Source: Blastocladiella emersonii ATCC 22665
Lineage: Eukaryota; Fungi; Blastocladiomycota
Length of the DNA: 64,000 nucleotides
NCBI GenBank assembly: GCA_025594325.1
Contig: JANHCV010000003.1
Coordinates: forward strand, 1,674,001 to 1,738,000
Direction: 5' to 3'
Below the pieces are notes generated by a model. The model did not search any database. It was not told the origin of the DNA and was given only the letters and a program-made list of their open reading frames with translations. Below are positions 6,984 to 51,500 of the stretch, in pieces. The stretch's first letter is position 1. Every line of letters starts with the position of its first letter. The position numbers and the translations under genes are program-made.

Positions 6984-8108
6984 GACGCGTGAGGCGTTCA
7001 TTCTGGCGGGCCTGGGTCCCATCGGCGTAGTGCAAGCCCGCAAGAAGGTAATCACACTGTACAGCGTCAAGCTCAGAGAAGGAGAAACCCAGCTGCCACT
7101 TCACCGACTTGACAAAGTTGGTAATTTCGGCCTTATAGGTGAACAGCGACGTGTCGGTGCCTGCGTCGGCAGCCACAGCAGGAAGTGGAAGGCCGTCGTC
7201 AATGATAGGCAATCTGGCATGTACCCGATGACGTGTGTCCTTGCCGTTCTCATTGCGACCATGAACATACTTGTGCACAAAGCCGTTGAGGAAAAAGCGG
7301 TTCCACGCCTCGTTCAGGATGGTGTAGCGACGAACCGGAGTCCCATGTGTAGCATCCGTCTGTACGAGGAAGCCAGGTTCGCCTGCATCACAAGTAATTG
7401 TCTTAGTGGCGCGTCAGGTAGCAAGACATGTGCAGGAACAAGCAGGGCCCGCGTTGCAAGCAGGTCTACACAATTGTTGTCGTTGCCCAAAAGACGCACA
7501 AAGCGTTGCGCGCCGCGGTGCCGCACAATGTTCCTGAGCCCGATGCGGTAATAGACAAGGCGGTTAGGGTGTGCAGGCGCGCCACATGCAATACCGATAT
7601 CGTGGTGCGTAATCAGGTACGTCACAAGCGCAATATAGTCCAGGAACCCGCGCGACGTGAGGATCTCGGTCCCGTCTGTAGGGAAGTCCGGGAACAAGCG
7701 CGCCAAGACTGTTGATTGCGTGACATCGGACTCCTCAAGCGGAACTTCACGCAGGGGCATCGCGTGTATAGTTGGGCCATTACCTGCAAGAGGAAGCGCT
7801 GCAACTTCTTCCGGCGAGATACGCTTCTTTCGTGCAGGGGCAGGTTGGATAATGACAGGCCGTGGGACAAGCGGGTGCACAGGAGCGATTTGAAGAGGGT
7901 CAAGTGGTGCCTGAGCGGGTGGCGGGATACGCGGTACAATTCGAGCATTTTGAGCGCGGCCAAGTTCGCTGTCCCGAGGTGGCACCACAGGTCGCAGTGA
8001 AGGAGAAGCGCCGAAATCTACATCCATGCGATCTGAGCGAGCGCCATGGAGAAGACCACGACCGCGAACGCAAAGTGGTGGTTCCAGGATACTGACATCA
8101 ACATCCAT
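6984..8108 (-). pseudogene. N-terminal half of the intein-like ORF (Hint-N and LAGLIDADG-like motif), frameshifted near 7314-7400
   Basis: DFPTDGTEILTSRGF (7644-7688) resembles intein block A, VDLLAT resembles block B, and LAGLHYADG (7018-7044) resembles the LAGLIDADG helix. Stop at 7314-7316 with continuation in the -1 frame. Confidence 0.6.
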
Positions 8109-8891: not shown

Positions 8892-9550
8892 GACGCGCCG
8901 CCGACGCCACCTCACATGACCGATCAGTTGAACTTTGGCAGCTCATGTGTGGCGGCACCTGAGCACGCTCACCCCGCCACTGTCACGTTCCGTTCTGTAG
9001 TTGTGGATTGTCGCCATGCACTTGCATGAGCCATGTAATAAATAATGAAGTTGGACTCGGTGCAACAGGGCTTGCGGCTAACCGCACCGTCCAAGTGCGA
9101 GCGGCTCACGCTGCGCGTGCTGCGGGAGCAGCAACGTCAACGGTCGCTGCGTGCGGCACCTGGTCCAAGGGTTGTCTGTGCCGCGACCCCGCGGCACTTC
9201 GCGCAACTTGGTCAATTTGGTGTGTTTGTACATAGCAGGGAAGACGGTGGGAGGGTGGGCGGGGCGGGGGCCGTCACCAGTTCATTCACTCGAGCTTTAA
9301 TTTATCAATCGTGCATCGTAGCTTGCGAGTTGGCTTGCGAGTCGGCTTGCGAGAAGTGCAGGAATCGGCGGCGCCGAGGCGAGGGTAGTGGCGGAGCACC
9401 GTGGCCGGCCCTCGCGACTCACCGATCAGTCGCTGAGTCGCGAGGGACACCGGCCGACCGACCCGTGCCGCGCCGTGCGCTCCCCTCCGCCTTCCCTCAC
9501 AATTATCCCGCTAGAGACGAAATCGCGGAGAATAAAAGAGCATAAACGGT

Positions 9551-18832: not shown

Positions 18833-21800
18833 TCAGCGGCACTTGGACCGGTTGGCGAGCTTGAGCGAGATGAGGGCGATGAGGCACCACGAGGTACCGA
18901 GGGCGGCCATGATGGCGAGGCTCGGGAAAAAGTGCGAGATGCGGTACGTGTAGAGCTGCTCGTCGACCTGGTTCTCGTTGAAGGGGCGGGCCTGGACCTC
19001 CTTGACGTACAGGGCCTCGATGGCGTACCGCGGCGGCGAAATGTCCCACAGCCACGCGATGCCGTCGTAGACGCCCGACGTCTTGACTTTCTCGAGCGAC
19101 GGGATCATACCCGAGAGCACCATGCTCCACAGCAGCGCGAACCCGGTGCCGACGAGCCCGACCGACTCCTTGGGGAACCACACGCTGAGAAAGTACCCCA
19201 TGCCGAAGGCCGTGTAGTACAGCAGCAGCGCGATCGAGTACAGCACCATGAAGTGCGACCGGTACGGGAAGAAGATGATGAGCGACAGCGTGAACATGAA
19301 CGCGGCGATCACCATGCGCGGCACGTCGGCGAGCATCTTGGCGATAAAGTACGGCAGCGTGGCGCGGCCGCTCGCCGTCTCGCGCCAGTACACGACGCGC
19401 TCGTTGCCAAACGTGTTGGTGGCGACGCTGATCCCCGCGAACATGACGCCGAGCGACATGAATACGCCGATCTGGCGCAGGCTGTCGACGGGGCCGAGGC
19501 AGAACGGCTTGAGCGCGGCGGGCGTGATGTCGCAGATCTCCTTGGGCTGCTTGCCGAGGTAGTCGAGGTTCTCGGACGCGACCGAGATGAAGGCGCCGCA
19601 CCCAAGGTGCAGCAGCTGGTCGATGACGAACTGCGGCGGCGTGCGGTAGATCTGGAACGATGCGCGCCGAAAGCACTGCCAGAAGATCATGAGCGAGCTC
19701 GGCGTCTCGCGGATCGGGTCGCGCGCGCACGTCGCGAGCCCGACGAGCCAGTCGGCAAACTCGCCCGCCACGTCCTTGCAGTACGTGACCCACTCGCCCC
19801 ACATGTCGGCGAGGTTCTCCTGCAGGTCCTGGAGGAACGTTGAGTGCTGGTGCGCGTCGAGCGTCGCGGGCGACACCGACGAGGCGAAGTCGGGCGGGTC
19901 GGGCGACTCGCCGCGCGTGAACCGCTCCCACGCGTGCACCAGGTCCATGGGCGTCAGCGGGCCGAACCGGTCCGACATGCACTTGCCCGACACCACGTCG
20001 AGCAGGTACTCGGCGTGGTTGACGTTGTTCGGGCAGTTGTACCCGAGGCTGCGGAAGTACTGCAGCGCGTACGACCGCTCGCCGAAGTATGCGGTGCGGC
20101 CGCCCTTGGCGAGGAGCAGCAGGTCGTCGAACTTCTCGAACGCCGCGGGCGACGGCGAGTGGATGACGGCGGCGATGGTGATGAACTGGTCGCGCGCAAT
20201 CGACTGCAGCAGCGAGCACACCTCGAAACTCGTCGAGCTATCGAGACCGGACGTTGGCTACAGCGGGACGAGCTGGGGTGAGTCGCGATCGCCTCGACCA
20301 GCGGAGCTAGATCCGTACCTCGTCGAGGAAAAGAACCGCGGGCTCGGCGACGAGCTCCATGCCGATGTTGGTGCGCTTGCGCTGGCCGCCACTGAGCCCG
20401 CGCTTGGCCTCGTCGCCGATGGGCGTGTTCATGACGTGGCCGAGGCCGAGGTACTCGATGGTTTCCAGCACCTTCTGCTTGACCATGGAGTGCGTCCAGT
20501 GCGAGGGGAGCCGCGTCTTGGCCGAGTGCATGAGGGTGTCGAGGACCGTGAGCTCGCGGATCATGACGTCCTCTTGAGGCACGAAGCCGACGAGTTTCTA
20601 CATGTTTAACAAGCGCGTGTTAGCAACCTAACGGGTGATGCGCAGCCGTAGCGAGTGAGCAGAGTCGTCGGACGTACCTTGTAGAGGTTGAGCTCGCCCT
20701 CCATGCCGTTGATCGACACGGACCCGGACGTGCGCCTCACGGAGCCGCGCAGGACGTTCAAGAAGGTCGTCTTGCCGCCGCCCGACGAGCCCAGTACGCC
20801 GCAGACGCGGCCGGCCTTGAGCTCGCCTGAGACGCCGCGCAGGATGTCGACACCGTTGTGGAGGCGGAGGCCGAGGTTGCTGAACTGAATGTCGAAGACG
20901 CGCTTCTTTTCGTGGTCGGCGCCGCGACGCGGGAGCGTAGCCGGACCACCGCCACCGGCAGCGCCGCCGAGCGCCTTCTTCTTGTTCTCGGCAAGAGCGC
21001 TGCTGTGGATGTTGGCCATGTTGGCCGAGTACTTGAGGTAGCGCAGCGAGTGGTGGCGGTTCTTGAGGGTGAACGAGGCCCAGGCGAGGAAGATGAAGGC
21101 GAAGACGACGTAGAGGACGCCGACGCGGCGCGGGTTGGCGGTGCCCTCGGGGCAGTTGGCGATGAAGTGGCACGGGAACGGGCGGATCGAGCCGCGCGGG
21201 CAGTACGAGCCCTGCGGACATGCGCGGATCGTGTCGGCGGTCGGGCAGTAGTAGCCCTCGCAGCAGTACAGCGGCTGCGCCGTGTTGGCGGGGCAGTAGA
21301 AGCCGAGACTGCACTTGAACTGCTTGGACGGGCCGAACGGGCAGAAGTTGCTACAGGGACGTGACAGGTTGACGGTCAGTCGGCGACAGCGTAGAGCGAG
21401 GCCGAGACGCGGAGAACGTACCCAGCGTCGCAGTCGTACATGTCGGTCCCGTTGCGCGGCGTTGACACGTAGTGGCAGACGTTGTTGGTGCCATTCTACA
21501 CGAAGACGAGGGTCAGATCACACCATCCAACATTCGAGGAAGATCCTGTCGTACAGCGAACTTGACGACCCGCACGCCCGGCGCCTGCTTGAGCTGGAAC
21601 AGCGAGGCAAAGTACTTGAGCGAGAACAGGTCGGACCACACGTCGGCCGAGTCGTCCTTGTCCTTGGGCGCCGCATCGCGGGGCGCGTTGTTATTGTTGT
21701 TGTTGTTGTTAGCGGCTGCGGGCGCGGGTGCTGGTGCAGGCGCAGGGGTCGGCGTAGGCGACGTTGCGGGTGCCGGCGTTGGCCGAGGCGCAGGTGGGGT

Positions 21801-28006: not shown

Positions 28007-29109
28007 TTACGGCCGGCCCGAGCGCACCGCGAGCCCGTGCTTGACGCGGATATAGTTCTCCATGGCGCCGTACCAGAGCACCTCACGCAGTCCCGCTACG
28101 TACGCGAGGCCGAACACGGACCCGCCGAGGTGCGCGACGTGGTCGAACGTCTGCCACCCGCGCACGACGCCGGCGAGGTCGAGCCCGACGAGCCCCGGGA
28201 ACGCGTACTTGAGCGGCAGGTCGACGCCCGGCAGGAAGATGAGCGAGACGCCGAGGTCCGGGTGCATCACGGCGACGGCGCCGAGGCACGCGAGCAGGGC
28301 GCCCGAGGCGCCGAGCGAGGGCAGCAGCATGGCGTGCGCGATGGTGCGCAGGGCGACGGTGTGCGAGGCGAGCGAGGCCATTAGGCCGCCTGCCGTGTAG
28401 AAGGCCAGGAACTCCTCGGTCGAGCCCAGGCCCTGGTGCAGCAGCGAGCCCACGGTCCACACGCCGAGCATGTTCATGCCAAAGTGCTACAGGGGCGCGC
28501 ACTTGTAAGTCTGGGCCGCCCGAGAATGGCAGAGATCAAGCGTACCAGGGCAGTCTGGTGCGAGTACGTCGACAGGAGCAGCGTGACCGACCGGCCGGAC
28601 AGCGGATGGTGGGTGAACCACTTGTACATGAACCGCTGCACGCCGACGCGCGGGATCTGCCACGCGAGGAACACGGCGGCGTTGACGGCAATCAGGCCGG
28701 CCGCCACCTTCTGCCCGTCGTACAGGTTATACCAGCGGTTGACGACCATGGTGCACGCCTTCTTGACCTCGAACGGGACCGCTGACCACTCGGCGATCCG
28801 GTGCACGGCGGCGCGCTTGGCGGCCGCGGCCTGCGCGCGCTGCCGCCGCCACATGTCCTCGAACGACGACGTGCCGCCCTGGCGCAGCACCTGGTTGCGG
28901 TCGTAGACGGCGACGCCGAGGCCGAACGCGGCCAGCGACCCGCCCACGGCGAACAGCGCAGGGCGAAGGTACCGGACCCGCGGGACCGTCGTGCTCCACA
29001 GCTCGGCGAGCGCCGGGTCCGCGTGCGTCGTCAGGGACCGCGAAGCGGGCTTGAAGAGGCGCGGCGCGGAGGTGCGCAGGGCGGCGAGGCGTGGCATGAG
29101 TGATTGCAT
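28007..29109 (-). CDS. Mitochondrial rhomboid protease (PARL/Pcp1-like)
   Basis: Arg/Ser-rich presequence, NAAVFLAWQIP, LLSTYSHQ..|HFGMNML, catalytic SLGASG and HVAHLGG. Confidence 0.92.
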
Positions 29110-29192
29110 GGTATGTGATGAGTGTGTACGGTTGAGGGGGAGAGAGAGGGGGGATGCGAGGGGGACGCGGCCGGAAGATCGACAACGCGCAC

Positions 29193-29364
29193 CGCCAGGG
29201 GTTCTAAGTGGGGTGGTCAAACCTGTGTTGGTGCATCCTACGGCCCCCTCTTCCGGAACAGTGGCTTGACGGTGGCTTGACGCTCACGCGGGCACGTTCC
29301 AGAGCTTCCGCACGTGCGCGGCGCCGCCCACGTGGGCGCGGCGCGACACGTCTCTCACCTCGCG
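29193..29364 (+). repeat. 172-bp inverted repeat, copy 1 (upstream of rhomboid gene)
   Basis: Reverse complement of 30812-30983 with a single mismatch seen (ACAC vs ACGC). Contains a tandem GTGGCTTGACG pair and CACGTG palindromes. Confidence 0.95.
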
Positions 29365-30811
29365 AGCACGATGAACGGCCTCATCGAACGAATACTTTGC
29401 TTCAGCTAGCGGCGTGAGAGTAGGTGCACTCAGTTCAAGTCAAGGGCCGAGTGAGCGGCGCCCCTGTTGCCTAGCGTGAAGGCGAGTGTGCCGCTGCGAC
29501 CTGAGGGAGGAGTGGCGGCGTGGGATGCCCACAGCTTGGAAAGTAAGCTTGAGTGGTCCTCGTACTACACACGGACCGTGCGCTCGAGCGAATCGCCCAC
29601 GAGGAAGCCCGCGCCAACTGCGGTTGCTGTCGGTATGTGCCGTGGAGCGCGGGAGGTTCAAGCAAGCGGTTTCGTCTGCGAATCCGCGGGTCTCATTGAC
29701 GGGATCGAGCGAGAGTCGTTTCACGGAGTACGAGTAAGCGGGCTCAGAACTCGCAGCCGCGTCGGCGCAAGCTGCAAAGCGCGGGCCGCGGACGCTGAGC
29801 TCGCGACGGGCAGTAGGATAGCGAGCGGAAGTACTGCGACGACGAACTATTGAAGTTGACTACATGGTCCGGGTCGCACCTGCGGCCACGAGCTCTCGAC
29901 GGCGCGGCCCACACATCATTAATGTAAGCATGTGAGCGTACATGCGCAGCCTGGCGGAAGTGGTGAGCGGCGCACCTAGGATCTCAACGATCTCTGGTAA
30001 AGCCAGCTAAGCGGATGGCCGCGATTCTCAGGCCCGCGCGATGATGATCATTGTCGTACGTCCGCGCAAACAGCCCACCGTTCGCGACGCGAAGTGTAAG
30101 ACAAGCAAAATTCCGCGGTGCTGCTGTCCGCGCGGTGCTCGGACCACAAGACGAGCGCTGCACGCGGGACGGAGCCCTAACGCAAGCGGAACTCGCCGTG
30201 TTTGCTGAGGATTGAGCGCTGCGGTAAAAATGAACGAGAGTACCATGGCCTAAGGATGATGAGCCGGCGCATGAAGCACGACGGACGAGTGTTTTATCAA
30301 TACGACGAGCTGCCGCCGGGACGGAATGTGAAACTTGGAGTCGAAGGTGCCTGAGCTGTGCGCTGAGCGTGGTGGCCGCCTGATACCTTGCTGTTTAGCA
30401 ATAGAATCTCATGGGAATCGGACGGTATGGTATCGAGCGAGAGCTGAACTTCGTGCGAGGTCGCATAGAGCACGAAGGTGACGCACTATTGTCGCTGAGT
30501 GGGTCATGAACGAGCTGGATGCGATGAACGAGTTCCGCGTCAAGGGTGACTACGTGAGCAGGCTCGCACACAGCGTCTGAGCGCTCACATAGACCTTACA
30601 AGTGACTATTCAGCGAGCGGCGGTTTACGGAAGCCGGCCTCAAGAGCTCAGCCTGACAGACGCGGCATTCCGCATCCGCAGATCAGGCGGGGACACGTAA
30701 AGCAGCAAGTCAGGACGCTGCAGCACGCGTTGCATGGAGTGTGCATGATTTACGAGTACTATTGATGCCACAGAGCGGCCGTACGGCCATGTGGAGGAGT
30801 GTGAGCGCCGG

Positions 30812-30983
30812 CGCGAGGTGAGAGACGCGTCGCGCCGCGCCCACGTGGGCGGCGCCGCGCACGTGCGGAAGCTCTGGAACGTGCCCGCGTGAGCGTCAAG
30901 CCACCGTCAAGCCACTGTTCCGGAAGAGGGGGCCGTAGGATGCACCAACACAGGTTTGACCACCCCACTTAGAACCCCTGGCG
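30812..30983 (-). repeat. 172-bp inverted repeat, copy 2 (abuts the Fanzor ORF)
   Basis: Reverse complement of 29193-29364. The ORF track shows the same 52-aa translation on opposite strands. Confidence 0.95.
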
Positions 30984-32571
30984 CGGCCAAGCACCGTGTC
31001 CGCGCCTACGCCGGGATCGACGTCCCGGGCCTGTCGTGGCTCGACCGTCTCGTTCGTCTTCGAGATGCCCGCGAGTACTTTGTCGACCGCGAGCTCGTGT
31101 CGGCCTCGACGCCGCGCCCGCGCATGGTCCCCAAGCTCGAGGTGCGCGGCCGGTTCTTCAACGTGCCGTTCGAGACGCTCATGGCCGTGGCCGGCATGCC
31201 GACCCACAAGCACCGGCATCCGCGCACGCCAGCGCCGGGGCGAGGGGATTGGCCCGCCCGACCCGTCGCTGACTACGACATCATCGCCGCCGACGAGGAC
31301 CCCGTCGCGGTCGCCGCCGCCCGTGTCCGCGTCGCCGCGTACGAGCTGCAGGACGGGCGGACGGCCAAGGCCTACTGGGACTACGTGCTGCACTGGTCGT
31401 CCATGTACGTCAAGCACTCGCTGTGCTGGCGCCTTCGACCTGGCGCGCAGCCCATCAACCAGTTCATCGGCTCGATCAAGACGGACGGGTACTCGGCCCG
31501 CGTCCCCATGTACCGCGACGGCATCTACCCGGTCGAGGGCGCCCCGTCCAAGGCCGCCACCGGTGCGCTCTCGTCCGCAGCGCTCCTCGCTCGCGCCCTC
31601 GAACCTCCTCTTGTACCTCCCGCTGTCGCCCCAAACGACCCACCCCTCGTCGTCTCCCACCCTCCTGATCATCGCGTCGCTCGTCGCCGCGGCGCCGGTA
31701 CCAACATGCACGACGGCGACATCGACGTGGCCGAGGGCATCGACCGCATCACCTTCGTGGACCCCGGCGCCAACTCGCCCATCACGGCGTTCACGGTCGC
31801 GCTCGTCCTGTTCTTCTACATTGTCGCCGTCCTCGAGCGCATCGCCATGATCCACGCCGACGGCACGCTCGACGACGACGCCCGCGCCGCCGTGCTCGAC
31901 GCGGTGCGCCCAATCCTGCTCGACATCGCCATGACCAAGGAGGGCATCAACCACCGGTTTGACGAGATCACGGCGTACGAGTGGCAGCACAAGACGGGCG
32001 CCCGCCTCAAGTCGAGTCGGTCGCGGATGTGGCGTGCCAAGTACGGGCTCGACGACCACGACGAGGACCGCTCGAGGGCGTCGCACCCCGCCGCCGACCC
32101 CGCCGCCGACCTCGGCGCCAAGATCGCGGCGAACGCGGCCGCCGAGGACGCGACGCTGGCCGAGGCGTGGCGCACGCGCGTCGGCCGGCTCGGGTTCTTC
32201 ACGCTCGGGCTCCGGCAGAAGATGTTCGACAAGCTCACGCACGCGTTCAAGGGCGCCTACGTCCTGATCGGGCACCAGTTCCACTACGGCGGCGTTTGGG
32301 TTCATCGTCGTGGTCCCGTCGCTGAGCTCGTCAAGCAGCTCGTGCGCCGTGGCACCAACATCTTCCGCGTCGACGAGAACTACACGTCGAAGCGGTGTCC
32401 GGTCTGCTCCGCGCTCTCGACGCCGCAGCAGCGCGCCGACGGCGAGTGCGACCTCATCCAGTCGCGCGCGTGGGGCACCAAGCACTGCCCGCGGTGTCGC
32501 GCGACGTTCGGCCGCGACCGCAGCGCCGCCTTTGGCCTGCTGCTGACCCACGCCCATCGCCTTCGGTTTGC

Positions 32572-32607
<36 letters not shown>

Positions 32608-32611
32608 GTAG
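30984..32611 (+). CDS. Fanzor1-type (TnpB-derived) RNA-guided RuvC nuclease, 5'-truncated; first in-frame ATG at 31124 (495 aa)
   Basis: SIKTDGYS (TDG 31481-31489), RuvC-I FVDPG (D 31760), RuvC-II VDENYTSKRCPVC (E 32375), CPRC, RuvC-III RDRSAA (D 32516). Intronless, with no stop from 30956 to 32609. Confidence 0.88.
32572..32607 (+). repeat. (TCAAGG)x6 microsatellite encoding a Gln-Gly tail of the Fanzor ORF
   Basis: Directly visible; followed by a CT-rich tract at about 32625-32695. Confidence 0.95.
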
Positions 32612-32719
32612 TTTGTGCCGTTGTGTTCCCTTTCTTTCCCTCTTCTCTCCTCTCCTCTCCTCTCCTCTCCTTTCCGCTTCTTCATCTCTTCCTGGCTGCT
32701 CAACAACCTCGAAACCCTC

Positions 32720-32860
32720 GTTGGAGACGGCCCCTGCGTCTCAGGTGCTTCATTGCGCCTTCGGTCCTACGGGATCACCTCGTGGTGCCGACCCACATTG
32801 GTCACGGCCAATGTGGTCACAGGTCTGTGTGCCTGTCAAGTATGTAAATGGCCTGCGCAT
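32720..32860 (+). ncRNA. Candidate Fanzor omegaRNA (scaffold plus putative guide)
   Basis: Run of hairpins directly 3' of the nuclease ORF: GAGACG/CGTCTC, GGTGC/GCGCC, GGTCC-TACG-GGATC, CACC/GGTG, CCACATTGG/CCAATGTGG, ACAGG/CCTGT. Position matches known Fanzor architecture; identity is inferred. Confidence 0.5.
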
Positions 32861-32900
32861 CCAGCGTACTCCATTAATACACAACAGGCTCCACACCACA

Positions 32901-34176
32901 TCACTGGAACTTGCGCTCGGCCTCGTCCGCGTCCATAGCGCCGCTCTTGACCGCGGCCACGCGCTGGTCGTACTTGTGGACGTAGCGTCGGTACCGGTCG
33001 CCGCCGTCGGTCCCAAAGAAGGTATCGACGACGCCCGAGACCCCAAACTGGTAGATGAACGCGTAGTGGTGCCAGTCGTGCTTGCGGGCGGACGGCCACC
33101 CGAACAGCTCGTAGCCCGAGTGCGTGTGGACCGTGGTCGTGATGGCGAGCGTGACCCAGACGAGCGCCGAGAACGGGTGCATGGCGAAGAGGACGATTCC
33201 GCCGAGGACCGGGGTCAGGTTCGACAGGAGGTGCTCGACCGGATGCGCGTAGGTCGCGGCGAGCCCGACGGGCGCCGTGAACTCGTGGTGCTGCTTGTGG
33301 AACGCGCGGTACAGCGGGCCCCAGTGGAACAGCCGGTGCGACGAGTAGAAGAGCAGCTCCTCGATGCCCGCGCAGATGGCCAGGTCGCGCGCCACCGTGG
33401 CCGCCGAGGGGAGCGATGCCGCCCAGGACGTCGCCGCAGCGGCCGTCGACAGACCGTGGTGGTACTGCAGGGCGGCCGGGTACGCGTACTTGAACAGGAC
33501 CAGGCCGTACGGGATGTTGATGAACACCTGGTTGCGCAGGACGACGAGCGCGCACTTGACCCAGTCGCGCGACGACACCAGCTTGCCGTCCTGGATCTTG
33601 TGCGCCAGCGCGAACCGGCCCAGCGCCGTGCTAGGGAAACGCAGCGACACGTCCAGCACGCCCAGGAGCAGCGCGTGCGTCCAGTACAGCGCGGCTACAC
33701 ACAGGCGGTCTCAGCGTCAGTACCCATGGGTCCTCGCAACTAATGAATCCGCACGTACTCGTCCACAGGAACAAAGCAATGGTCATGAACCCCTCGACGC
33801 CCCAGTACTCGACCATACTCGCCCACATCGCGCGGAGCGCGAGCGAGGCCGCATGAACATGACCGAGCGCGGCGCCGAGCCCCGGCACGTCTGCGAGCAC
33901 GCCGCGCACCGCGGCCGGGAGCACCGACGCGGGCGACGCCAGGTCGAACAGGTCAGGCATGCACAGCAGCACCGTCACGGCGGCGAAGAAGAGCGGCTGC
34001 CCGGCCTCGCGCAGGTGCAGCGACCGCAGGAACAGCTGCGTGTCGGTCGGCAGCGGGGACTCGGTAGTGGGAGCGGCGGCGGCGGGCTTGGCGGGCTTCG
34101 CGGCCGCGGCTGGCGCCGCCGCCGTCGTCGTCGTCGTGGATGGTGGCGGTGGTGGAGTCACGGTGGCGGTCGTCAT
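32901..34176 (-). CDS. Fatty-acid hydroxylase / sterol desaturase superfamily protein (FAXDC2-like)
   Basis: His boxes SHRLFH, HKQHH and HDWHH; EFTAPVG, YAHPVEH, HSGY, FG..G.VD..FGTD. Confidence 0.9.
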
Positions 34177-39170: not shown

Positions 39171-42100
39171 CTACTGCCCCGCCGTCTGGATCTGGCTGGC
39201 GTCGAGCCCGAGCGCGTGGAGGAACAGGTTGACGTTGAAGATGGACCGCTCAGCCTTGTCCGCGGCGACGCCTTCGGGCGCAGCGGCGCCGTCGTACGCG
39301 ACGTCGAGCTGGCCGGCGACCACGTTGCCCAAAATCCGCTCGCGGACCTCGGCCACGAGCATGTGCTGCTGGTCGGCGGACGCGGCGACGGCGAGCGACG
39401 CGATGAACTGCCAGACGTGCGCGTCGTCGGTGAGGTAGAACTCGAGGAGCTCGGCGGCCGAGGGGACCGCGATCCCCGACTCGGGTGGCGGGAGCGGCGG
39501 GACGAGCAGGCTCGGCAGGCGCGCGAGCGGGAGCGACGCGGGCAGGTTCGACATGGAGGTCACGGGGAAGAAGGCGAGGTAGTGGCCGTGCAGCTCGCCG
39601 AACACGCGCTGGTACAGCTGCGGCCACCCGTCGGCGGCGCCCGCCTGGCTGAGGATCTCGGCGCGCGACACGAGCATCGTGAGCAGGGCGAGCCCGGCCT
39701 TGGCGCTGCCGAGCCGCACCACGTCGTTGCGGTCGAGGAGCACCTCGAGGCACGACGACACCACGTCCCAGGAGGCCTCGGTGACGAACGCCACGACCGG
39801 CGGGAACACGTGGTGCATGAACGTCTCGACGTCGTCGACGAACTGAAGCAGCGCGTCGACGCTGGGCCGCGACGACGCGAGCCCGGGGAACAGCTGCGGC
39901 GCCGCGAACAGCGCGGGGATCGACGCCTGGCGGACCACATCGAGCTGCTGCGCGTGCGCGAACAGGGCGAGCACGAGCAGCGTGACGTGCTGCGGGGCGA
40001 GCGCGCGCACCATGCGCGGGAACAGCTTCTTGCCCTTGGCGCACGCGAGCGTCTGGACGAGCGGGTGCACCTCGCCCTCGCCCGACGTGTGCATGCGCGC
40101 CCACAGCGTGTCCATGGCCGTGCCGAGCTCGCGCTCCCACACCTCCGTCTCCTCGTCGAGCGACAGCGGCCGCTCGTCGCCGTCCTCGGTCACGACCACG
40201 GTGCGCTTCGAGTCGGCCGTCGGCGCCGTCCGCTGCAGGTGCTCGACCTCGAGCACCAGCGCGTACAGGTCCTCGGTCACCTTGAACACGAGCTTGCGCG
40301 CGAGCTTGCCGTTGAGCCCGCCGAGCGACGACGAGGGGGTGCCGCTGGCGGGACCCGACCCGGTCGCGCTCGTCGGCGCCGACGTGTTGATGCTGACGAT
40401 CTGGCGCGGGTTCTTGGTCGTCTTGAGCGAGATCTTGCCCAACGCGCCCTCGAGCGAGACTGGATTCAGGTCGCACATTAGTTTTCCTTCTCGCGCGCTA
40501 GTGAACGGGTGAAAGCGCACACTGCGTGGTCTTGGGCCGCTTCTTAGCGTTTTGGACGATGCGGTTGATCTGGTCCTGGAGCGAGCCGTTGCGCGCCGCG
40601 CGTTGGAGCAGGCCGGGCTGGCGACGGCGGTCGTTGCCGCCGCCGTTCTTGTCGTTACCGCTGCTGCTGCTGCCGCCCGCGGTCGTCGACGCCGCCGCGT
40701 TCTCGGACGCCGCAGCGGGAGCGGCGCCCTCGGCCTTGCCCGACTCGGCGTCCGCAGCCGGGGTCGCCGGAGTCGCCGGCTCCTGCTGCTGCTCCTGCTG
40801 GGGCTCGCCGCTAGCCGCAGCCGCAGCAGCAGCTTCCTCGTCCTCGTGGGTGGCCTTGAACACCTGGAAGTAGTAGTCCTCCTGCATGGGGTCGGCCGAG
40901 ACGAGCTGCGAGATCTGGATGCGCGCGATCATATCCTTTTCGTACTGGGACATGATGCCCGTGAACCGCTGGGTCTCGCGCATGCGCGTCTCGCGGCGCG
41001 CGCGACGCAGCGCCCGCGTCTGCTGCTCGCGCGCCTGAGCGTGCATGTGCTGGCCGAGCATCATGCGCTCCACGTCCTCGAGCGACATGGGCGGCATGCC
41101 GGGAGGCATCATGCCCGGCGGCGGGGGCGGCATACCAAACATGGGCGGCATGCCAGGGGGCAGCATGCCGAACGGCGGCGGCATCATCCCCGGGTGCGCC
41201 ATGTGCGGCGACGGGACGGCCGCGGCAGCGTCGCCGTTGTTCTTGTCGGCGTCCTCGCCGGCTTCGCCGGCCGGCGGCGGGGGCGGCTGCATGCCCGCGG
41301 GCGGGTAGCCCGGCGGCATCATGCCGGGCGGCGGCGGCATCCCGAACATGGGCGGGTACCCGGGCGGCATGCCGGGCGGCGGACCCATGCCCGGCGGGAA
41401 CATGCCCATGTACGCGGGGTGGCCGGGCGGCGGCGGGTACATGCCCATGGGGCCCATGACGTGCGGCGGCATGTCGGCGGGGTTGCCCGTCGACGGCAGT
41501 GGCAGGTTGCTGGAGCTGTTGTTGTTGGAGGGCGCGCCCGAGGGGTGCTGCGACGGCGGCTGCGAGTTCATGAGGCGCGCCTCGAGCTCGGCGAGCGACA
41601 GGCCCTGCTGCTGCTGCTGCTGCTGGGCAGGCTGGCCGGAGTACAGGGCGTCCGAGGACGCGTTACCCGAGGGGCCTAGGTGTGGGCGGGAGTCGTGTCA
41701 GTGCGAGATCGTTACTGGACCCGCGTAACGCGGCGTACCCGAGTGGCTGGCGCGACGGGCAGCCTCGAGGCAGTTGAAGGCCATGCTGAGGGCGCTGTTG
41801 GCGGCCGAGTCCTTGCCGGCGCCGCCGGCGCTGGTGTTGCCACCGGCGAAGCGCATGGCGTCGAGCTGCTGGGCGAGCTGGTCGTTGGCCTGGCCCTGCT
41901 GGTACTGAGCAGGCGCACTGGTAGACGACGGACACGCTGTCAGCCTCATCCCTCCTACTCGTAACACCGTGGACGCGTACCCCCACCCGCCCTGGACCGG
42001 CATGCCGTGGATATCGCGGACGGGCCCGCCGGCCGGGTGCTGCATGGCGGCGTTGGACACGGGCGCGTTCTGGCGCTCAAAGACGCTGAGCAGGTCGCTG

Positions 42101-48575: not shown

Positions 48576-51500
48576 ATGGGCAAGGCCCGCAAGAAGGGCG
48601 CCGCGCCCGCGGTGCCGGACCTGGTCCGCATCGAGGCCGCCGAGCCCATTGCCGTGGCCGTGCACGAGGCCCTGCGCGTCGCCGACGCCAAGGCGCCCGC
48701 CTACCACTACGGCTACCGCGCGAACGCCTCGCAGGACTCGCTGTTCGACGACGCGGGCGTGCTCGACGCCCTCGACGACGCCGACGCCGCCATCGCCGCC
48801 ACCCTCTACGGCGGCTACAACGCCTCGCAGATGTACACGTGGCTCGGCGCCGCCGCCATGGTCGGCGTCACCCCGCCCACGGCCTCGTCCACCATCCTCG
48901 CCGAGCTCACCTCGGACGCCGCCAAGGACCGCTGGTACAAAATGTACAAGAACATGCGCCCCGAGCCGCTCCCCTCGGCCATCGAGGCCGCCAAGGCCGC
49001 TGGCCGTAACCCGCCACCGCCCCGCGACGTCGTCCCGCACGCCTTCGCCATGGCCAACTCGCTCTACTTTCACCTGCGCCGCAGTGGCGTTGACCAGTCG
49101 CTGATCCTTCGGTACGCTCTTCTCACTGGTCGATCTGCCAGGAACCGCGAGCTAACCGACACGCACCTGCCGACAGAGGCGAGAACGGATCCGGCAAGAC
49201 CCTCCAGGCCGACCTGATCCTGCAGCAGCTGTGCAACATCTCGGGCAACTCGAAGCGCGACGAGCGCGTGCACCGCCGCGTCCTCGCCGCCCAGACCGTC
49301 CTCAACGCCTTCGGTTGCGCCAAGACCACCTCGGGCGCCGACTCGTCCCGGTTCGGGTCGTACCACGAGGTGCAGTTCAACGAGCGCGGCAAGCTCGTCG
49401 GCATGCAGCTCATCGCGTACGGGCTCGAGCGCAACCGCGTGCTGCGCCAGCGGCTCTCGGAGCGCAACTACCACGCCTTCTACTACCTGCTCGCGGGCGC
49501 CGACCCGGAGCTGCGCCAGGAGCTCGGCCTCAACGGCGCCGTGTTCCCGTACCTTAGTTTCGGCGCCAGTATGCCCGTGCAGGGCGTCGACGACGCCGGC
49601 CGGTTCGCCGCGCTCCAGGACGCGATGCGCGCCGTCGGCATCTCCAAGCGCAACCAGTACCAGATCTGGAAGCTGCTGGCCGCCGTACTCCACCTCGGCA
49701 ACATCCGGTTCGCCGTCGACAAGTTCAACGAGCAGGAGTCGTGCGTCGTGGCCAACCCGGACGCGCTCCAGTTCGTCGCCGGCCTGCTCGAGGTCGACCC
49801 CGACTTCCTCGCCAACGCACTCACGTCCAAGACGGCGCTCGTCGGCCGCGACCTCGTCACCCAGCTCCTCACCGTCGAGCTCGCCAACGACCACCGCGAC
49901 GCCCTCGCCAAGGTCCTCTACACGGTCCTCTTCACCTGGCTCATCGAGCAGATGAACAAGAAGCTCTCGGTCGAGGACGACATGGCCAATTTCATCGCCC
50001 TCGTCGACTTCCCCTCGGCCCCGGCCCCCGCCGCCTCCGCCGACAACGACACGTCCACGCGCGCCGGCGCCAAGGCTGCCGCCGCGGCGGCCGCCGCCGA
50101 GGCCTCGGCCGACGTGTCCAAGGTCGCCTTCGCGTACGCCAACGAGCGCATCGACGCCTTCGTCAACAAGCGCGTGTTCGAGTACGGCAACGCCGAGCTG
50201 CGCCAGGAGGGCATGGTCGTCCACGACACCAAGTACCCGAAGCCGGCCGCCGCCGAGAAGGCGTTCCTCGCCGCGGCCACGGCCGCCGCTGCTGCCGAGA
50301 CGGACGCGTTCCCCGGCGACTTCATCAACCTGTTCCGCGGCGGCAACGGCCAGGGCGGGTCCCGCGCGCCGCTGTTCCACGAGCTCTTCTCCGAGTCGAT
50401 CATCTCCATGGAGGCGTTCGAGAAGAACTCGGCGACCGTCGTCCGCGGCCAGTCGCTCATGCGCCGCAAGCCCAGCATCAAGCGCGCCAACTCGCGCGGC
50501 CGCGCGGGGAGTACCTCGGGCTCGCTCCGCCGTACGGGTTCGTCGGCGACCGCCGTCGGGCCCAACGGGCGCTCGGGTAAGGACGCGAACGGCGGCGTCA
50601 AGCCCGAGTCCGAGGCCGGCGTGTTCATGGAGCAGCTCGACGCGCTCATCGACGCGCTCGAGAACACGCACGCCAAGTTCCTGTTCTGCGTGCGGCCCAA
50701 CGCCGACCACTCGACGTCGTTTGACCTCAAGCTCGTGCGCGCGCAGGTCCACGACCTCCGCCTCGGGCTCGTCCTCGCGCACGTCGTCCGGCGCGGCGGC
50801 GGGTACACGCTGCGGTTCACGCACGCCGCGTTTGTCGAAAAGTACGGCCACCTGTACGACCTGGCCGAGGCCGGCGACGACCCGCGCGCCAAATGCGCGC
50901 TGTTCAAACAGACCAAGGGCATGGCCGACGCCGAAATGCACGTCGGGGCCTCGCTCGTGATCCTGCGCGACGACGCGTGGCTGCACCTCGAGAACGTGGT
51001 GCGCAAGCGCGAGCACGACGCCAAGCGGCGGTCCAAGAAGACGCCGCTCGGGCCCGGCGGGATCCCGCTCGCGCGCGACCGCCCGCTCTTCTCGCCCAAC
51101 GGCGACGCCCGCACCGAGTATTCCGGGGAAAACGACTCGGTGTACTCGGAGGGCGACTTTGGGGATGACGGGTTCGGGTCGGAGTGGGACGGCGACTCCA
51201 TGTACGGCGAGTCGGTCGCCGACGACATGGCGACCAACTACGAGCTCAACGAGCGCAACGTGCGCGCGCACGACGCCATCACGCGCGGCGTCAACGCGGC
51301 GCTCGACCTCAAGAACGAGGGCAACGGCGCCGGGATCGCCGCGTCGCACGCGCCCGACCACGACGACGGCTACGCCATGACGTCCGAGCGCCGCCGCTGG
51401 ATCCGCATCGTGTGGTTCCTGACGTGGTGGATCCCGACCCCGTTCCTGCGGTGGTGCGGCGGCATGCAGCGCGCCGACATCCGCATGGCGTGGCGCGAGA

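Follow-up and report, generated by a model that had tools for sequence, protein, structure and literature searches.

A conserved and structured right-end tail of a truncated Fanzor element in Blastocladiella emersonii as a candidate omegaRNA scaffold

A stretch of 64 kb from the genome of Blastocladiella emersonii ATCC 22665 (assembly GCA_025594325.1), hereafter called the window, carries on its plus strand the remnant of an open reading frame (ORF) for a Fanzor, a eukaryotic protein of the TnpB family. The remnant extends from position 30985 to 32611 and is open up to its stop codon at 32609-32611. It is followed by a pyrimidine-rich, CT-rich linker of low complexity, which is about 110 nt long (32612-32721), and by a conserved tail at 32722-32881, the candidate omegaRNA scaffold that is the subject of this study. 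The neighbouring host gene is convergent and encodes a member of the fatty-acid hydroxylase family (32901-33659 on the minus strand; Pfam E 2.9e-20). Between the right end of the tail at 32881 and the stop codon of this gene (32901-32903) there are 19 nt. Fanzors are the only RNA-guided DNA nucleases known from eukaryotes. They are being mined as compact genome editors, and for every new lineage the scaffold and its boundary have to be defined. A literature search for papers linking Fanzors with Blastocladiella found none.

The protein family of the ORF was assigned by profile and motif searches. The plus-strand ORF at 30956-32611 matches the Pfam domain Cas12f1-like TNB with an E value of 1.2e-7. 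Among the paralogues, all five match this domain (PF07282; best E 8.6e-11), and all five also match the NCBIfam family guided_TnpB (best E 3.4e-8). In the window protein, the DPG motif is retained, and so are both CxxC motifs, the first preceded at six residues by a Glu and the second followed at six residues by the final Asp. The combination of DPG in RuvC-I and a Glu six residues ahead of the first CxxC has been described as a fingerprint of Fanzors (Yoon et al., PMC10711439). It is present in the window protein and in the annotated paralogues P0001, P0002 and P0004, while P0003 has DPD instead. With 199-202 and 26-29 residues, the spacers between the motifs exceed those of the published search pattern, which is therefore not matched in its strict form. 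The closest clusters in the ESM Atlas consist of eukaryotic and giant-virus TNB proteins. A sequence search of the PDB revealed nothing significant, the only hit being Cas12f with an E value of 0.24, and an AlphaFold2 model built from five sequences was unusable (pLDDT 34). As judged from domains and motifs, the protein is a TnpB-type RuvC nuclease with a zinc-finger (TNB) insert.

A word search identified four annotated relatives of the Fanzor protein, all of them in B. emersonii ATCC 22665 (loci L001 to L004). Further word searches with the C-terminal half and with a profile of the five paralogues returned the same four annotated proteins and no additional ones. Moreover, viral and metagenome contigs yielded no relatives in scans with exact motifs and protein patterns. 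The copies are of two types. By blastn, window 30985-32881 is about 85% identical over 1.9 kb to L001 5291-7143 and to L002 4066-5946; these three copies are referred to as A-type. The B-type copies, L003 and L004, are 69% identical to the window copy in the coding part only. The reading frames of all three A-type copies are still open, and the host genes surrounding these copies are mutually unrelated, the neighbours of the paralogues being a DUF4750 gene and a protein kinase gene. The full A-type element has a length of about 2.15 kb, contains a single gene and begins with ACGCTCC and ends with CATACA. Comparison of the A-type copies revealed neither inverted repeats nor target duplications at the termini, and only two left flanks are intact, which is too few for calling a transposon-adjacent motif. 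A profile of both tail types detected no additional or RNA-only copies in the window and the four loci. According to these alignments, the segment at window 30985-32881 belongs to a single-gene mobile element of B. emersonii of about 2.15 kb and represents a copy that is truncated at its 5' end.

Some further features of the copies were observed. A (GGTCAA)n microsatellite at window 32572-32607 encodes a C-terminal (QG)n tail; in L001 and L002, the corresponding repeat has another sequence and another length. The deposited model of P0001 (L001 4001-6882) joins an upstream alpha/beta-hydrolase gene to the Fanzor ORF, yielding a protein of 866 aa with an Abhydrolase_3 domain in addition to the TNB domain. 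This fusion is probably an annotation artefact because the left end of the element is located at L001 5007. The two B-type loci are unrelated at their 5' ends ahead of a shared N-terminal coding stretch, and the upstream parts differ (L003 4000-4200 and L004 4780-5360), L004 being about 360 bases longer. L004 also contains a second, decayed Fanzor fragment (7313-7943) 250 nt downstream of the B-type copy, which is 69% identical to L003 and has lost the zinc-finger cysteines.

The window copy is incomplete at its left end. L001 and L002 extend 284 nt further upstream to a sharp left end, and this part includes an ATG opening the sequence MPRRLPRE. The window copy lacks these 284 nt and with them the first 25 or so codons, the start codon and the left end of about 220 nt; the first in-frame Met of the window ORF is codon 57 at position 31124. 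The missing piece is absent elsewhere in the 64-kb window. In place of the left end stands one arm of an inverted duplication of 172 nt. This right arm (30812-30983) is 99% complementary to its partner at 29193-29364 and abuts the start of the paralogue homology at 30985. Since the arm stops one base before the Fanzor homology, the rearrangement that gave rise to the duplication also beheaded the element. The inverted duplication encloses 1447 nt of lower GC content that are rich in stop codons. The sequence-only reading had located its candidate RNA downstream of a Fanzor gene; the TnpB/Fanzor-type ORF is indeed there, but the 5' truncation of this adjoining copy and the loss of its start codon had gone unremarked. 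Thus, the window copy can probably not make the full-length protein and is probably either a relic or a trans-acting copy. With the left end and the start codon lost, an RNA from this copy could act only together with the protein of full-length copies such as L001 and L002, and the copy would otherwise be a relic. The use of a protein provided in trans by another copy has been proposed for gene-less loci of Spizellomyces punctatus (PMC10432273).

The boundaries of the tail emerge from a three-way alignment of the A-type copies. The pyrimidine-rich linker, which is found in all three copies, hardly aligns, with 46-55% identity to L001 and L002. The conserved block starts at about 32722, is about 80% identical to L001 and L002 and stops abruptly after ATACA at 32881. 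The first base past ATACA is C, G and T, respectively, in the three loci, and from there the flanks are unrelated. A search with the tail profile recovered exactly 32722-32881. As the homology ends sharply at 32881 and the flanks are unrelated, 32722-32881 represents the conserved right end of the element. The tail is located on the ORF strand and 3' of the ORF end (32611), and one-base indels between the copies indicate that it is not protein-coding. When A- and B-type copies were compared, third-codon-position identity did not rise towards the 3' end, which gives no sign of a scaffold reaching into the ORF. Lack of conservation among the Fanzor paralogues had been named beforehand as an observation that would speak against a guide RNA at this place; the segment is conserved in both L001 and L002.

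The sharp boundary also determines where a guide could be located. It has been shown that Fanzor guide RNAs are derived from non-coding sequence 3' of the gene that directly adjoins the right end, and that they run about 11-21 nt into the variable flank (PMC10432273, PMC10530073). For instance, the RNA of SpuFz1 from S. punctatus consists of a conserved scaffold that is followed by a variable sequence of 14-15 nt (PMC10432273). The guide of the B. emersonii element had been proposed to start near 32841, and this coordinate turned out to be wrong. The segment 32841-32860 is identical to L001 at 18 and to L002 at 16 of its 20 positions, and in the consensus fold it pairs with 32862-32881. Because it is conserved and paired in the last hairpin, it belongs to the scaffold, where it forms the 5' arm of that hairpin. 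Following the logic of SpuFz1, any guide would have to begin at 32882, which is 41 bases to the right of the earlier proposal. The only possible source is the unique flank at 32882-32901, since the flanks of the three loci are unrelated. For the guide, a length of about 15-20 nt was assumed from the published Fanzors (PMC10432273). With the earlier coordinate, any experiment would have failed. What does hold for the corrected guide is its predicted orientation, which is antisense to the 3' region of the convergent hydroxylase gene, here to about 19 nt directly following the stop codon.

The right ends of the other copies are placed similarly. The distance from the right end to the stop codon of the convergent gene is 19 nt in the window (32881/32901), 35 nt in L001 (7143/7178), 61 nt in L002 (5946/6007) and 140 nt in L003 (5898/6038). 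As the right ends lie close behind convergent stop codons, the putative guides would be antisense to host 3' regions. The convergent arrangement is found in four of the five loci, and with so few loci a preference cannot be distinguished from the effect of a compact genome.

The tail is predicted to fold into a row of hairpins on the plus strand. All six stems that had been named from the sequence are present at their coordinates in minimum free energy (MFE) or consensus folds. SL1 (32724-32742) and SL2 (32743-32760) have 6 bp each, and SL3 (32763-32776) has 5 bp with one G-U pair and a UACG loop. SL4 (32778-32785) is weak. SL5 (32786-32821) contains a core of 9-10 bp at 32793-32816, and SL6 (32820-32839, comprising the named stem 32820-32836) is formed in a register that differs from that of the paralogues. 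Moreover, there is a seventh hairpin on this strand, SL7 (32843-32881), which was missing from the earlier list of six stems and whose stem takes in the very last base of the element. In the fold of the window copy, the putative guide flank also pairs with SL6. This pairing was discarded as meaningless because it has a core of 6 bp, for which about 0.5 chance matches are estimated.

The folding energies were compared with those of dinucleotide-preserving shuffles. The plus strand of 32720-32860 has an energy of -59.8 kcal/mol and a z score of -2.85 against 200 shuffles, while the z score of the minus strand of this segment is -1.3. The signal is stronger for 32732-32881 (z -5.0) and for 32720-32902 (z -5.6), both on the plus strand, the latter segment including 21 nt of the flank. 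For the plus-strand tails of the window copy, L001 and L002, the MFE amounts to -62.5, -62.7 and -58.8 kcal/mol, respectively, with z scores of -5.0, -3.9 and -3.1. The corresponding minus strands have energies of -50.6, -39.0 and -39.4 kcal/mol and z scores of -1.7, -0.5 and 0.0. For a comparison with the rest of the 64 kb, 150-nt windows were folded on either strand, and the energy was adjusted for GC content by regression. After this adjustment, the tail ranks within the top 0.2-0.7% of the 5110 windows. A difference of 12.5 kcal/mol between the strands, as seen in the window copy, is nothing unusual for this genome because 29% of the windows reach it, and the asymmetry was dropped as a stand-alone argument. 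About half a dozen other places in the 64 kb fold as well as the Fanzor tail. Comparably or more extreme windows are located at 9301-9550 on both strands, at 1326-1700 and 40901-41100 on the plus strand and at 19651-19800 and 49926-50075 on the minus strand. Over 29000-34000, Rfam 15 gave no match at E values up to 1, a result that carries little weight because Fanzor RNAs differ widely between lineages (PMC11423790). A tRNA/tmRNA scan likewise gave no match and thus no tRNA-like element. The tail of the B-type copies L003 and L004 is about 110 nt long and also has a sharp end. It has no sequence in common with the A-type tail and gave no significant structure signal.

The three A-type tails allow the question to be addressed whether the fold is maintained by evolution. 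The consensus fold has 58 pairs, of which 55 are located inside the tail. Among the 165 cells of these 55 pairs, pairing is lost in 8, and five of the 8 belong to SL6 of the window copy, which is refolded in another register. Eight pairs are altered on one side and yet still paired, mostly by changes of G-C or A-U to G-U. Such one-sided changes via G-U fit an RNA that is read from the plus strand. Only one pair inside the tail is changed on both sides among the three sequences, two of which are 95% alike (L001 and L002). With so few and so similar copies, covariation has no statistical meaning, and a placement test was used instead. For this purpose, the same number and kind of substitutions was put at random positions in one copy, which was then refolded. 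The real tails have energies of -71.5 kcal/mol (window copy) versus -69.9 (L001) and -65.4 kcal/mol (L002). When the 29-31 substitutions that separate the window copy from L001 and L002 were placed randomly, the energy was -54.7 +/- 4.5 kcal/mol, which corresponds to a loss of 12-17 kcal/mol. Only 0.1-1% of 1000 random placements matched the real fold (p 0.001-0.01). No signal came from the minus strand (z -1.2 and -0.3) or from coding sequence, of which eight blocks as long as the tail were tested (z -1.7 to +1.2).

One part of the tail has changed in a different manner. At window 32829-32840 (L001 about 7092-7104), roughly 13 consecutive bases have been replaced and are unlike those of both paralogues; this looks like a single template-switch-type event. 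Pairing of the new block with the upstream arm again yields a hairpin, in a different register. When the 13-column block and four edge columns were kept fixed in the placement test, the fold was still better than expected in the direction from L001 or L002 to the window copy (p 0.004), but the effect weakened in the reverse direction, with p values of 0.11-0.14. The primary sequence of the tail is not conserved beyond expectation, since its identity of about 80% between the window copy and L001 or L002 is no higher than that of third codon positions (85-86%) and is thus at most neutral evidence. Moreover, the divergence between L001 and L002 is the same at first, second and third codon positions, which is the pattern of neutral decay. 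Together, the folds and the placement tests give moderate but not conclusive support to the idea that the tail of this family has evolved under constraint on its sense-strand fold.

Position, strand, conservation pattern and sharp boundary match what has been described for Fanzor guide RNAs (PMC10432273, PMC10530073). The tail is also unusually stable, and its fold is kept although the sequences have diverged. We consider it reasonably likely that 32722-32881 encodes the scaffold of an omegaRNA. The sequence-only reading of a scaffold and guide behind the Fanzor gene is thereby upheld in position, strand, paralogue conservation and fold, but not in the coordinate of the guide. The predicted RNA would be transcribed from the sense strand, contain about seven stem-loops and either be derived from the 3' UTR of the Fanzor mRNA or be made along with it. 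It would continue for about 15-20 nt into the unique flank from 32882 onwards, and this extension would provide the guide. If the system behaves like TnpB and the characterised Fanzors, the protein would bind this RNA, and the complex would cut DNA that carries a match to the guide beside a short motif. A possible target is the element-free copy of the insertion site, the cutting of which could help the element to persist. The tail corresponds to the expected anatomy of such elements and the window copy is truncated, so the finding is only a modest surprise. Its value lies in a testable scaffold, namely 32722-32881 and its equivalents in the two full-length copies, and in a scaffold/guide junction for the Blastocladiella family.

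Other explanations for the tail have to be weighed. The structure could belong to the host, as the minus-strand 3' UTR or terminator of the convergent hydroxylase gene, whose transcript probably enters the segment given that the stop codon is only 19 nt from 32881. This explanation is very improbable and is largely refuted by the paralogue alignment: the segment is common to Fanzor paralogues that are located beside unrelated genes (DUF4750, protein kinase), the minus strands of the paralogues fold no better than shuffles, and the minus strand lacks a structure-preserving pattern of substitutions. The tail could also be without a function at present. A dead transposon copy would then be decaying neutrally at this end, with hairpins arising from GC-rich composition, ancestry and template switches that create inverted repeats. 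Such decay would be in line with the tail identity not exceeding that of third codon positions, the equal divergence of L001 and L002 at the three codon positions, the truncation of the window copy and the other places of the window that fold equally well. The 13-column block, swapped in one event that itself created a new hairpin, also fits. However, z scores of -3.1 to -5.6 against dinucleotide shuffles were obtained across all three copies, and the fold has survived 15-31 substitutions far better than random placement predicts, on the plus strand only and with null results for the coding controls. Moreover, all three ORFs remain open. Neutral decay, which we consider unlikely, could explain the present copy but not why the tail of the family has such a form.

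A role of the tail as a cis element rather than as a guide RNA is somewhat less easily dismissed and appears rather doubtful to us. The tail would then be a DNA structure at the right end, formed by the top strand as in IS200/IS605, Helitron or Crypton-type elements and recognised by a transposase or recombinase acting in trans, or it would be a stabiliser or terminator in the 3' UTR of the Fanzor mRNA. Indeed, the structure ends exactly at the boundary, with the last hairpin taking in the terminal bases; the lack of inverted repeats and target duplications resembles elements that are moved by single-strand or recombinase mechanisms, and pairing that is specific for one strand would suit a single-stranded DNA intermediate as well. 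However, known end signals consist of one short subterminal hairpin, in contrast to the seven stem-loops that span the 160 nt of the tail. No matching structure or repeat is present at the left end (L001 5007 onward), and the termini are unlike the 5' TC and 3' CTRR of Helitrons. In addition, the region encodes a guide RNA in every characterised TnpB/Fanzor element (PMC10432273, PMC10530073, PMC10711439). The two roles are compatible and not mutually exclusive, so that a tail encoding an omegaRNA scaffold may at the same time act in cis.

The scaffold reading can be extended to a more far-reaching scenario, which we regard as a long shot. In fungal promoters, start sites are commonly preceded directly by pyrimidine-rich tracts. 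B. emersonii might possess a lineage-restricted family of solo-Fanzor elements without inverted repeats, in which an unusually large guide RNA of about 160 nt with about seven stem-loops is launched from the pyrimidine-rich tract as an internal start region. The elements would insert tail-to-tail at 19-140 nt from the stop codons of convergent host genes, and the guides, being antisense to host 3' UTRs, would allow them to influence the termination or expression of their neighbours. If this were true, even a beheaded copy would affect a neighbouring gene and not only its own spread.

The candidate scaffold can be compared with those of characterised systems. Known Fanzor scaffolds have a length of 75-150 nt and two to four stem-loops (PMC11423790). 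The B. emersonii tail is at the long end of this range and has more stem-loops than the known ones. The element of SpuFz1 is similar in being a single-ORF element of about 2.1 kb from a zoosporic fungus (Saito et al. 2023, PMC10432273). In S. punctatus, partial gene copies occur as well, and there are also RNA-bearing copies without a working gene (PMC10432273). However, the SpuFz1 scaffold comprises 75 nt with two stem-loops, and the element has 30-nt inverted repeats at both ends (PMC10432273), whereas the B. emersonii element lacks inverted repeats, and its tail of about 160 nt forms about seven stem-loops and is set apart from the stop codon by the pyrimidine-rich linker of about 110 nt. 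A match of the protein to the solved SpuFz1 chain was not detectable in the PDB sequence search. The RNA of S. punctatus has been shown by small-RNA sequencing, while that of B. emersonii is a prediction from the sequence. A long scaffold of 150 nt with four stem-loops has been described for GtFz1 from Guillardia theta (Xu et al. 2024, PMC11423790), the locus of which also lacks inverted repeats and a recognisable transposase (PMC10432273). In contrast to the B. emersonii scaffold, which gives no sign of reaching the ORF, the RNA of GtFz1 extends over the final 17 codons of its gene. Fanzor1 RNAs have a first stem-loop of 7 bp in common (PMC11423790).

The fRNA of CrFNuc-1 from Chlamydomonas reinhardtii resembles the tail in being conserved across gene copies (Jiang et al. 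2023, PMC10530073). Further RNA-only copies exist in that organism, and processing of the fRNA from the mRNA has been proposed (PMC10530073). The fRNA was observed by RNA sequencing and stabilised the protein, although no cleavage was detected (PMC10530073), whereas the RNA of B. emersonii is a predicted one. Finally, the omegaRNA or reRNA of bacterial TnpB systems such as ISDra2 and ISXfa1 (PMC10711439) shares with the B. emersonii tail the scaffold at the right end, the guide taken from the flank and the lack of target duplications. The bacterial scaffolds overlap the 3' end of tnpB and form a pseudoknot beside the guide (PMC10711439), whereas the B. emersonii element is predicted to have a hairpin there, closed by the bases that directly precede the flank.
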